64,000 nt of DNA from Paragordius varius (lineage: Eukaryota > Animalia > Nematomorpha), in NCBI GenBank assembly GCA_964247055.1, contig OZ176059.1:3162001-3226000 (forward strand), written 5' to 3'. Position numbers and translations under genes: made by a program. Shown piece after piece: positions 47,001 to 53,000 of the stretch. The notes beneath the pieces were generated by a model. The model was not told the origin of the DNA. It ran no database searches and saw nothing but the letters and a program-made list of their open reading frames with translations. Position 1 is the stretch's first letter, and every line of letters begins with the position of its first letter.

Positions 47001-50000
47001 TATAATTTTTTAAAAAAAATAAAAATATTTTTCTAATTAAAATAATATTTTTATTAAATAATATTATTTATACGTTGGGCAGCCTGTCTATATAAACCAT
47101 CGGGGTTGGTTAATATATATCTATCTCGATATCTATAACAAAAAAAATAAAATTAAATTAATTTTAAAATTAATTTTTAAATATTAAAATATAAATTTAT
47201 ATATATTAGCAAATCACAAAATTAAAAAAAAGATATATTTTTCGATATTAAAAAAAATCTTTTTCTAAAGATTAAAAAAAATTAAATGTTAAAAAATTTA
47301 AAAATCAAACAATATGAAATATTATTATATAAAAATGTTTTTTCAAAAAATATTAAAAAAAATGTTTATTAAAATTAATTCAAAAAAATAAGAAAATTAT
47401 TTTTTTTTAATATTTATAAAATAAAATATTAAATATCTAAAATATATTTTTAAAAATTACTATTAATTTTAAATAAAAAAAATAATATATTGTATATCAA
47501 AAATATTTTTAATTATATTTACAAAAATAAAAAGAATAAAATAGTTTTAAGAAAAAGTATTTAATAAAAAAATTTATTTTATTTTAAAAAATAATAATTA
47601 AAATTTTATTTAAAAAAAAATTAATTTTAATTTTACCGATTTTCCATATTATACATTTCTGGACTTTGGCGTTTCTGTGCTCCTGAAGAATATATCAGCT
47701 GATCTGCATCATTTAAAAACATGTGATCGGATGAATGAATGGCATCTGCTGCTATTTTATCATATGGTCTCATGCCTCTCAGCTGATTGTCAAATTTTTT
47801 ATCCTTTTTCGCTTCCTTCTCCTCGCTTTGACTTGTCGTTAAATTATTATTTGACTAAAAAATATTTAAATTAATTTATTTTAATTATATTTAAATTAAT
47901 TTTTAAAAAATTAAAAATGAAACTATTTTTGTACATTTAAATAATATATTTTTATTTAAAAATAATTTCTTAAAAAAAAATATTTATAAAATTATAATAA
48001 AAATATTTATAAATATTGAAATAATTATAAAAAATTTTCAATTAAAAGTATTAACATAGATAAAGTTTTTAAAAAATTTATTTCCTTTTTAAAAATAGAA
48101 TCAAAGTTTGTTTCAAAAAAATATTAAAATCAAAATCTGAAATATTTTTCATTAATTTTTAACATATTAGTTAGAAACTATTATTTAGAATTATAAAATA
48201 TATTAATTTAAATATTGAATAAATTAAATATATATAAAAAATAATTTTATATGTATATCTAAAAAAATTATTTAAAATTATTTAAATTAAAAATTTATAT
48301 AAAAATATATCAGCTGATTCTGATCTCATTCCTCTCAGCTGATTGTCAAAATTCTTAATAAAATAAATTATTGATAACTATATATTTATAAGATTTGATA
48401 AATTGAAATTATAATTTTTTATTTAAAATAAATTTAAACATAAAATGTTTATGAAAATTAAAATAAATAATAAGGTATAACAAAATAATAAAAGTAAATT
48501 ATATATTAAATTCTGAAATATATTAAAATTAAATTATATTTTAAAAATAAATAAAATAAAATAAATTTAAATAAATATAAAAAAAAATATTTATAAAAAT
48601 AAATGTAGATAAAAATTAAAATTTAAAATTAATAATACCATTAAAATTATATTTTGTAGATCTTCTAAAGTCTCACAGCTGATATCTGGTGATTTACAAA
48701 AATCAGTTGCTGCACTTTTTGCTGTTTTTCCCGTTTCCAAAAACATATGTTGAATTCGACCCTAAAATTTTTATTTTAAAGTATCAAATATCTATTACAC
48801 TAGACAACAAATTTTTTGGCCAAATGAGATTATTTTCGTTTTAGTTAGCTAATAGTATACTTATACCAAAAATTTAAAAAAAAAATGGGCTACTTGAAAG
48901 GATTTTTCAAAAAATAAAATTTTCTGTTTTTTGAAAAAACGGTAATTTAACAAGTTAATCAAAGATATCAACTACAAAACTGCTTTATATGTAGACAAAT
49001 TATATATCAATCGATAGAGAGTAATCGATTATATATAAAAAATATAAAGATAAATGATTTTAATTAATATGCTTATAAATTTTCAATTTAAAATAGCAAA
49101 AATTAACGTTTTTTTGTGAGCGAAAATCTTAAACTGTAAAGTTTGCTAAAAAATTACGGTAAATAACAATTTTTAACTAATAAACATTGCTCTTTCAGAA
49201 TAAAGAAATATTTTTTCTGTATAAAAAGTTTTTGTCGCTTTTATGAGGTGATTTTCATTTGCAGTGGTGTGTTAAATTTTATCAAAATATATACAAAAAT
49301 ACTTTCCTAGTGCATTAATGTATAAGTTTTTAAATCAAATCGTTGATACGAGCGAGATCCAGCAAGCAGGTATTTATCCTTATAATATAGAACGCAACTG
49401 CAAAAATGATCCGAACAATTTTTGTATGTGCTGCGGAAGAACAATATTAATGGTAATGGAAGAAATTAACATAAATTATAATCCCGAGGACTGGGCATTA
49501 TTATAAGATTCCAACATGGTTAAAAAATATTCATAATTTTAGGTAGAAATTCATATTGTTGAATATACAGGATAACAAGTATCTTTTAATAATTGGGTAT
49601 GCCAGGGCTGCCAAAGAATCATATGAAATTTTCAAAAAAAATTTAAATTATACAAGGGATAATTGGAACGTTATTGGTGACTTTAAAGTAGCTAAAAATT
49701 AACATTTAGGTTTTATTGATGATTGCCGGCTTGCAGGGTGGGTTACCTAAGTACCACTGTATATTTTGTCTGTGGAATAGCAGGGAGCGTGACTTACACT
49801 ATCGAACGAAAGACTGGGGTTCCAGAGTCTTCACAATTGGATTGCATAATTGTGTGAGGGAACCCCTCATTGATATAAAGAAAGTGTACATCCCCTGCCT
49901 ACATATAGCACTGGGACTCTTTTCAATATTTATTAAAAACTTGGATAAAACATCCAAATCGTTTATTTATTTTCAATCTAAACATAAACTTACCAAGGCT

Positions 50001-53000
50001 AAGGCAGAGGCCGGAGTGGTGACGGGGCCGGTGATGAAAAAAATATTTACAGATACATATTTTTTTGAACTACTTAATGAGAAAGAGAGGCTAGCATTTG
50101 ATGCTATGCAAAAATTTGATTCTGGGTTCTTAGGTTTGTATATTATAATATGTATAGGATCTTACAAATCGCCACGATATCTAGAGTTGGCAGAAAATTT
50201 AATAAGAAGTTTTCAGGATATGGGTACCTCATTAAATTAAATATAGGTTGTCAAATGTCCATGAAAATGCACATGGTGGATGAGCACCTCAAGAATTTTC
50301 CCTTTAACAATATATCTGACCAAATCGGGGAAAGAATGCATCAGGACCTGAAGATATTTGAAAAAAGATATAATAATAAAAATACTATTAATATGATATC
50401 TGATTTTATTTGGAATCATACATAATTTTTATATATTTATATGCCACCTATATGTATTTACAATAAATAAATGTATTGAAATTGTATTTATTTTGAAATC
50501 GATTTATTTAGCGTAAATAAATTGCTCTGTACAATATGTGATAAAAATCTTAGCATTAATATGTTTCTCTGTTTGTGGTTAAGTTTATTAAATATAATCT
50601 ATAGATATCCATCAATTTATTTGAACAATAAATAGGTTTGAGCTTTCAGATTTGTGTAAATTAAAAATTTCTTCACATAAATAGGATACCATAATCAATA
50701 AGTTTACGTAATATATGTGATTAATCCATTTTCTATGATAATTACTCGGCCTATATATAAATGTTAATTTTACCATATCCATCTCGTTCAAATTTAAAAA
50801 AATATAAATATACACAAGGAAAATAGATTTTGCATAAAATTGGATTGGGTTCTCCGTTACTGATGTACTTAAATTGGTTCATAACTTTAAGTTAAAATTA
50901 AAATTGAACAAAAAAATATATATATTCTAAAAGCTGATGCTTTAATCTATAAATTAAATACGTTATCATTACACTGAGACATATTTACAAACGTTTGTGA
51001 TGAGCTTGTAAAAAAGCAAAAAATTTAACTATTATTCTCTTAATTCAAGATTTTTTATAAAAGCTTTCATAATATATTTATATGTAAAAGATAGAGTTTT
51101 TTATGCTTTATTTAATGATATAAGTTTCATATTTTTAATATTTTTCTCTCTAATAAAATATTTTATAAAGCGTCCGATTTATTGATTATTTTAAAATTTA
51201 CAAAATATTAATTTTCTCAAAATCTATGCAAGCCAGGTCAAAAATTTTTTCGGATTCGGATTCTGAATTGTATACTTGATTAAATTTCTGATTTTTACAA
51301 ATGGCTGTTAAAAAAAGTCAAAATTTGTTGTCTAGTGTTATTTATTTATTTATTAAATTTTAAAAAAATATATTATATATTTTACATAATATTAAAGAAA
51401 AAAAATTTTTTTAATTGAAAAATATAAAAATTTTTAAATATTTTTAATCAAAAATTAAAAATGATATTTTTGAACATAAAATTTTAAATATTTTCAATAA
51501 TGAATATAATAATATTAAAAAATAAAAAAATATTTTAAAAAATACCAAATATCAATATTATAAATATAAAATATACATTGTTTTTAATAATAAATATAAA
51601 AATATAAAATATATTTAAAAAAAATACATTTAAAAATAATATATCATAAAAAATTTTAGAAACTAATTTAAAATAAAAAATAAATAAACTTTAAATGGGC
51701 TATTTTCATAATAAGGCAGGCCAAAAACTAAAATACTATCAGCTGTTTCAATCAATGCGTGCTGATCAGGTGGTAAGTTTTGGGTGATCAGCTGTTTGCA
51801 GTCGAATAAAAGTGCCATTAGTTGGTTAGATGAATCCATGGTAAATGAGACCGTGTGCCATCTGTTTTTGTCGTCGGGGATAACAAATGAATTTGTTAAA
51901 ATAAAAATAAATATGTTTTAATATTAAAATTATTTAAAAAATATTTTTAAAATATTTTTAAAATAATTGTAATATTTATTTTATAAATAATTATATTTTT
52001 AATTAAAAAATCATTCACCTGAATTTTTATATTATATTTTTATTTTTCAGAAATAAATTATTTTTTGTAAAAAATTTAAAAAAAAAATATAAAATTAAAA
52101 AAATAATAAAATTGAAAATTATAAAAATTAAAATTAAAAAAATAAAATTTAAAAAATCAAATTTAATTAATATTAAAAAATTAAAAATTTAAAAAAATTG
52201 AAAATAAAAAATAAAAATAAAAAAAATTTAAACTTTCCATCATTAAAGGCAGGTAAGCCATCTGTAAATTTTAACGTCGCAAACGTTTCTGGCGCATCAG
52301 CTGATTTTCCTTCTTCATCTTCCCCCACCTGTTGTGTTTCATTCATAAAAGCAGCTGAGCTTGTTTTATTATCAGCTGTTTTTACGACCATAATTATTGC
52401 GCCATCAGCTGGTGCCAATTTGATTGCGAGATTGACGTCATCATTGGAATCATAAAGAGTTATGACTGACATCAGCTGATCCGTATCAGCTGATTTCCTA
52501 AAAATAATAAAAAAAAATAGATAAATTATTAATATTCATATTTAATAATTCTAATATTTTTAAAAAAATAAATAATAATTATTCATATATAATTTGAAGG
52601 ATAATTTTATATAATATTATTTTAAATAAAATAATTTTTAATATAAAAAATAATTATATTATCAAATATTATTATTAAAATTTTTGAAAATAATTATTTA
52701 ATATATAAAATAAAACTTTTAATATTAATTAAGATTTAATAAATACTACAATAGATATAGTAGAAAAAATTTTTTTTTATAAATATATTTTAAAATAAAC
52801 AAAAAATAATAATAAGTAATAAAATAATATTTAAGAAATTCAACAACTTATCAAGATCAGCTGTTTCTTCTGTTTCAATCTGAAAAGAAATTGATATTGT
52901 GAAGTCTTTTGGGAAAACTAAAATATTAAAAATAAAAAATTAATAAATATAAAAAATTTTTTTAAAAATTATATTTTTTGATTTATAATTAAAGTTATTT

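Follow-up and report, generated by a model that had tools for sequence, protein, structure and literature searches.

The window analyzed here is a 64,000-nucleotide (nt) stretch of the hairworm Paragordius varius (assembly GCA_964247055.1, contig OZ176059.1, positions 3,162,001 to 3,226,000 of the forward strand); all positions are those of the window unless a relative is named. It carries a fibrillar collagen gene on the minus strand (Pfam Collagen, 6e-19; COLFI, 5e-14), and one intron of this gene holds, in antisense orientation, a Chapaev3-type DNA transposon whose transposase region is interrupted by putative introns of only 21 to 28 nt. The whole element spans 48798 to 51337 on the plus strand (2,540 nt) and is internally deleted and non-autonomous. 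The recipient host intron occupies 48762 to 51689 on the minus strand, with GT at 51689-51688, AG at 48763-48762, and phases 0/0, as read from the sequence; it now measures 2,928 nt, compared with approximately 385 nt prior to the insertion, and its 3' splice site is 36 nt downstream of the element.

The two ends of the element are perfect 18-nt inverted repeats (CACTAGACAACAAATTTT and its complement), with 48798-48815 being the reverse complement of 51320-51337 in a repeat search; the left repeat (plus strand) starts with CACTAG and the right one (minus strand) ends with CTAGTG. They are flanked by a TTA target-site duplication, read from the sequence at 48795-48797 with an A before it (48794) and at 51338-51340 with a T after it (51341), fitting the TWA rule for these elements (PMC4079192). 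Chapaev and Chapaev3 transposons are recognized by 5'-CAC...GTG-3' termini, by insertion between A and T with duplication of 3 base pairs (TWA), and by three motifs of the transposase, C(2)C, LH, and H(4)H (PMC4079192). All three motifs are found here, as CIFC, CLHI, and HMVDEH, respectively, and are aligned to the same motifs in relatives. A first-pass annotation of this DNA had named the element Chapaev3, and we accept the name because every hallmark that can be tested is present, namely the termini, TTA between A and T, and the three motifs.

The transposase has many distant relatives. In a search of 1.84 billion protein representatives, the longest open piece (49716-50237) has 1,150 matches at an E value below 1e-3, the best at 1e-28 and about 40% identity (phmmer, HMMER), and a profile search seeded with pieces from the window gathers 1,242 relatives, none of which exceeds 47% identity. 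Named relatives are from a pseudoscorpion, wasps, moths, a mantis shrimp, fishes, and a bat, and the full-length ones have 480 to 640 residues. Pfam is without a model for this transposase, an exact look-up of the open reading frame (ORF) in the window gave no record, and no spliced product of the family is present in the protein collections among the 1,242 relatives of the profile search. We aligned 37 full-length relatives to the element by tblastn and used 19 of them for a profile of 560 positions, which serves as the reference for the exon structure described here.

The first-pass annotation had listed five GT...AG segments in the transposase region, and all five are present, with a G+C content (GC) of 0.17 to 0.23 and TAG ends; each begins with GTA or GTT, and the boundaries are of the form G/GT...AG/G or A. 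Three of them are exact gaps against the profile. Exon 3 (49547-49687, plus strand; profile 264-315, hmmsearch E 3e-10, also seen by tblastn) is followed by putative intron 3 at 49688-49709, a 22-nt GT..TAG segment in phase 0, whose retention would lead to a stop after VAKN. As had been proposed, its removal fuses GDFK to the downstream residues, and relatives run from DFK into V..L.G.Q.G, so that the segment is an exact gap. Exon 4 (49710-50133, plus strand; profile 314-457, hmmsearch 8e-48) contains CIFC and CLHI and ends at putative intron 4, a 24-nt GT..TAG segment at 50134-50157 in phase 1 within the Gly codon of FLG. Taking this segment out gives GFLG-SYKSPRY and drops LYIIICIG, for which every aligned relative has an eight-residue gap (FL--------GN).

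Exon 5 (50158-50223, plus strand) adds 22 residues that are part of a single-domain alignment, and putative intron 5 at 50224-50246 (23 nt, GT..TAG) is also in phase 1 of a Gly codon; its removal yields QDMG-CQMSMKMH, which matches MG-C.MSLK.H of the relatives as an exact gap, in agreement with the earlier proposal. Exon 6 (50247-50425, plus strand; profile 477-538, hmmsearch 2e-19) contains HMVDEH and GERMHQD and closes with a stop codon at 50423-50425. With introns 3 to 5 removed, exons 3 to 6 form one profile domain covering positions 264 to 538, at 288 bits and an E value of 8e-90, without an indel at any junction.

The second segment required a correction. It had been placed at 49519-49542, where its removal was thought to eliminate a stop, but a 24-nt segment is a multiple of three and thus cannot shift the frame; the upstream and downstream frames stay unjoined, and a TAG at 49544-49546 remains in the downstream frame. 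Only one GT..AG pair joins the upstream frame, which ends at 49518, to the downstream frame, which starts at 49547, and it delimits a 28-nt segment at 49519-49546 (plus strand, phase 0, GT..TAGGTAG) that bypasses the nearer TAG acceptor at 49542. The first segment, at 49370-49390 (plus strand), is a possible fifth intron of 21 nt with GT..TAG ends that is in frame, contains no stop, and is suggested only by its intron-like look. Adjacent to it is an N-terminal Cys-rich motif at 49390-49440 (plus strand), which corresponds to profile positions 3 to 19 (hmmsearch), aligns by tblastn to the N termini of P0071 and P0068, and is up to 73% identical to the N termini of relatives (blastp).

We consider it likely that the four GT-AG segments of 28, 22, 24, and 23 nt are ultra-short spliceosomal introns that the host handles alongside its long ones. 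We infer from the DNA that the splicing machinery of the host itself excises them from RNA. The positions of introns in relatives are informative in this respect. L004 has an 86-nt GT-AG intron (508-593) after TTTCTTG (FLG), and L006 has a 150-nt GT-AG intron (882-1031) after TTTCTCG (FLG); both are in phase 1 in the Gly codon, both match junction 4, and in both relatives the homology picks up again past the intron. L007 has a 67-nt GT-AG intron (1476-1542) between KAFG and ANMTPKMH, in phase 1 in the Gly codon and matching junction 5. A loss of ORF homology precisely at the end of FLG or MG is seen in several relatives, and the DNA behind some of them was read. The 24-nt and 23-nt segments occupy the same codon and phase as these 67- to 150-nt introns and are therefore taken to be true family intron positions, at which the putative introns of the hairworm element are three to six times shorter than their counterparts.

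Most relatives have no interruption at these points. Relatives are contiguous across junctions 2, 3, 4, and 5 in 178, 210, 199, and 176 of 274 cases, respectively; P0002 and P0003 are each encoded by one uninterrupted ORF, of 1,680 and 1,494 nt, respectively. None of the 274 relatives compared has an intron at junction 2 or 3, in a sample in which few relatives were read as DNA and most proteins had been predicted by ORF callers, to which intron-containing copies would be lost. Three apparent further instances were rejected. Introns suspected in L001 near junctions 3 and 5 proved to be single-base shifts in continuous DNA, the one suspected in L005 at junction 4 is a plain stop that ends the ORF, and a clustering of ORF starts at junction 3 that resembled an intron sign is explained by a conserved Met, with L004 being continuous there.

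Compositional tests show how seldom such segments arise by chance in this AT-rich DNA. Random 22- to 28-mers with a GC of 0.25 or less, drawn from either strand of the window, begin with GT and end with AG in a fraction of 2.7e-4, such that four of four inserts would do so with a probability of about 1e-12 to 1e-15, or about 3e-12 if five placements are allowed for each. The 1,108-nt ORF region contains seven low-GC GT[AT]...TAG candidates of 20 to 30 nt, all of them at the five loci; the same count in 500 dinucleotide shuffles is 0.69 +/- 0.80 with a maximum of 4, and the opposite strand of the ORF region has zero low-GC GT[AT]...TAG candidates.

The first-pass annotation further held that all exon phases chain correctly, and this does not survive. 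The 49519-49542 segment leaves the frames unjoined, and an in-frame TAA remains in exon 2 at 49504-49506 (plus strand), where relatives have Ile (tblastn; WRLFIDSS in relatives, WALL-stop-DSN here). Moreover, some 218 residues are deleted. At a deletion junction at 49441-49450 (plus strand), profile positions of approximately 20 to 237 are gone between the Cys motif and the next block; by hmmsearch, residues 39 to 55 of the piece correspond to profile positions 3 to 19 and residues 59 to 75 to positions 238 to 254, and the deleted positions (about 218) are not matched anywhere else in the element. No transposase can come from this copy, because of the missing residues and the TAA. It is a dead, non-autonomous pseudogene with intact ends, which could at most be moved in trans.

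Several observations weigh against tiny introns at this locus. Because the copy is a pseudogene, decay might in principle account for any of its sequence. Junction 2 is not free of gaps, as four profile positions are absent even after removal of the 28 nt. The segment at 49370-49390 is unsupported by relatives, being upstream of the first residue that is aligned in them, and its chance occurrence is plausible. The host gene in the window has only long introns and thus does not display a tiny class. The shared positions after FLG and MG could also be parallel gains instead of inheritance, as the tree described below does not separate the two.

It nevertheless seems very improbable that the segments arose by chance insertion as the pseudogene decayed and resemble introns only in appearance. 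The copy has certainly decayed, as the TAA and the large deletion show, and the 21-nt segment at 49370-49390 could well be fortuitous. Against this, the four inserts defined by homology all have GT...AG ends (with a probability of about 1e-12), they share a common length of 22 to 28 nt, a TAG end, and a low GC, two of them match introns of relatives in codon and phase, and the opposite strand is without such candidates. Removal at the DNA level, in the manner of the internal eliminated sequences of ciliates, is scarcely credible. The sizes do overlap with those of the shortest eliminated sequences in Paramecium, but the boundaries here are GT...AG, the positions that restore the frame lack a TA repeat, relatives carry ordinary GT-AG introns at the same positions, and the host, with its collagen and COLFI domains, is an animal.

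The insertion and the family differ in apparent age. This particular insertion looks young, since its ends and TTA duplication are perfect, its non-coding GC is above that of its surroundings, and it has no CAGCTG. The element has a GC of 0.27 (0.22 in its non-coding part) compared with 0.04 to 0.12 in the surrounding host intron; the window has a GC of 0.15 overall, with many kilobases at 0.05 to 0.12. CAGCTG occurs 85 times in the window and not once in the element, for which about 8.5 occurrences would be expected at the density of bins with a GC of at least 0.2, these being mostly host exons. The lack of CAGCTG had been read as fitting a recent arrival, and the absence itself holds. The arrival is another matter: a tree of 207 exon-4 equivalents is unresolved and gives the element no supported placement, and the end branch of the element exceeds those of all other rows (1.39, with a median of 0.28). 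With these features and an identity of at most 47% to any relative, the family does not look newly arrived, however young the insertion.

These data also bear on whether the element brought its tiny introns from an ultra-short-intron lineage, such as a dicyemid, myxozoan, ciliate, or similar, into a host that has none. Chapaev3 elements do move horizontally (PMC4079192), the collagen gene that received the element contains exclusively long introns, and parts of the element are near-identical in sequencing runs labeled as four other organisms. We nonetheless regard such an import as improbable: with no relative above 47% identity among the 1.84 billion representatives and with the longest end branch in the tree, no donor is visible, and an element would have failed to multiply in a host unable to remove its introns. 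The first-pass annotation had offered import and a second, ultra-short intron class of the host as alternatives. Of these, the host's own class is favored and import from a tiny-intron lineage disfavored, because relatives have ordinary introns at the positions of two of the tiny ones. Such sharing fits shrinkage within this genome and requires no tiny-intron donor.

If the host does splice introns of 20 to 30 nt, a more specific history can be proposed as a version of the same explanation, in which the introns after FLG and MG became shorter after being inherited, and those at junctions 2 and 3, perhaps also at junction 1, were gained in this genome as AT-rich GT...AG inserts that such a host would tolerate. 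We regard this as quite possible without holding it to be the probable course. Contiguity across junction 2 in 178 of 274 relatives and across junction 3 in 210 of 274, with an intron there in none, speaks for this history, as do the ordinary introns of relatives at junctions 4 and 5 and the fact that most Chapaev3 transposases are encoded in one exon (PMC4079192). The tree, however, cannot separate gain from loss, and few relatives were read as DNA, with ORF callers being expected to miss the intron-containing ones. More tentatively still, ordinary introns of the family may have been cut to the host's 22- to 24-nt minimum after entry, with two or three tiny introns added.

Host splicing of tiny introns would account for the locus as follows. 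A Chapaev3-type cut-and-paste transposon inserted antisense into an intron of the fibrillar collagen gene. In transcripts of an intact master copy, the host spliceosome would excise the tiny segments, and the resulting mRNA would encode a transposase of about 560 residues, which would act on the CACTAG...CTAGTG ends and generate TWA duplications. The putative introns after FLG and MG are at family positions and much shorter here than in relatives, and the other two are known from this element alone.

Introns in the 20- to 33-nt range are familiar from Paramecium (see also PMC5014332). In that organism nearly all introns are tiny. The segments described here are similar in size, in AT richness, and in GT..AG ends, and three of the four supported ones are likewise not multiples of three, such that their retention would truncate the protein; Paramecium, however, is a ciliate, whereas the present host is an animal. 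Transposase genes that depend on the host spliceosome are also well known, with the P element and Tc3 carrying introns of host size. The putative introns here are far shorter than those, and for two of them a longer counterpart is known from relatives in other hosts.

Among Chapaev3 elements themselves, most transposases are single-exon, and those of the Merrow and Garfield families are two-exon (PMC4079192). The hairworm element shares with these the termini, the TWA duplication, the motifs, an occasional transposase intron in some families, and a patchy distribution among animals. It differs in having an apparent four or five introns of 21 to 28 nt instead of none or one, and this copy is internally deleted and stop-bearing, with an identity of no more than 47% to the relatives found. 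A survey of 51 animal genomes (September 2026) finds introns below 30 nt only in myxobolid myxozoans and Dicyema japonicum and makes no mention of Nematomorpha (PMC13644364); hairworm genome papers, as far as compared, do not take up introns. Dicyema japonicum and the myxobolids likewise have GT-AG introns of about 22 to 27 nt in an animal (PMC13644364), but their genomes are compact with short introns throughout, whereas here the candidate tiny introns would coexist with host introns that are hundreds or even thousands of bases long. What is new at this locus is the occurrence of putative tiny introns at the same position and phase as the 86-, 150-, and 67-nt introns of relatives.

Should the host indeed splice these segments, the lineage of this hairworm would be a further one among animals with tiny introns beside kilobase ones, and extreme shortness would be possible in a genome that is not compacted. 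The fragmentation of genes by gene finders in this genome would then have an explanation, and transposons scored as broken by ORF scans here may in fact be intact. The transposon offers an outside reference that host genes lack, in that a tiny intron and an ordinary intron, or none, can be compared directly at the same codon. If the shrinkage or gain histories are true, dated transposon copies would provide a clock for the shrinkage and origin of introns, and one that applies to an animal running tiny and long introns side by side.

Several additional observations concern the family. L001 to L003 have an N-terminal Cys-motif exon approximately 500 to 900 nt upstream of the main transposase ORF, and some family members thus have a long first intron too; members of the P0002 type have the motif in the same ORF. 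The best-scoring relatives, P0001, P0010, and P0019, are all from one ENA assembly, sample ERZ21867824, in which the transposase is annotated as a row of short ORFs (e.g., 2167-2484, 2501-2920, and 2914-3501). Breaks between these ORFs are no more than a few bases from junctions 3 and 4, which would fit either tiny introns or frameshifts in that genome.

No second copy of the transposon family is present inside the 64-kilobase (kb) window. Among public runs under the same organism label, X1 to X4 and X15 contain the element, and X10 to X14 are marked as RNA. Runs labeled as four other organisms (B to E) contain 10 to 56% of the 31-mers sampled across 48700-51350, and this presence could reflect close relatives, infected hosts, or horizontal transfer.

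A scan for tiny introns in the host exons across the window gave nothing convincing. One 23-nt low-GC GT...CAG segment at 609-631 on the plus strand is flanked by two CAGCTG sites and is part of a GC island close to the 3' end of the collagen gene; it is on the strand opposite to that gene and is probably a chance occurrence. The intact 36-nt tail of the recipient intron (48762-48797) may suffice as an acceptor, if the host can define introns of 20 to 30 nt. Of the 85 CAGCTG sites in the window, 66 are in the 19.7 kb of 100-nt bins with a GC of at least 0.2, mostly collagen exons, and examples near the element are at 48311, 48336, 48676, 51740, and 51789. Another collagen intron contains a 3.8-kb block with a GC of about 0.3 (30500-34300), which is probably a repeat or transposon remnant and includes short repeated units, among them an 82-nt tandem unit at 30837-31043, as well as many short open frames rich in KTGF/KPVF/NRF.

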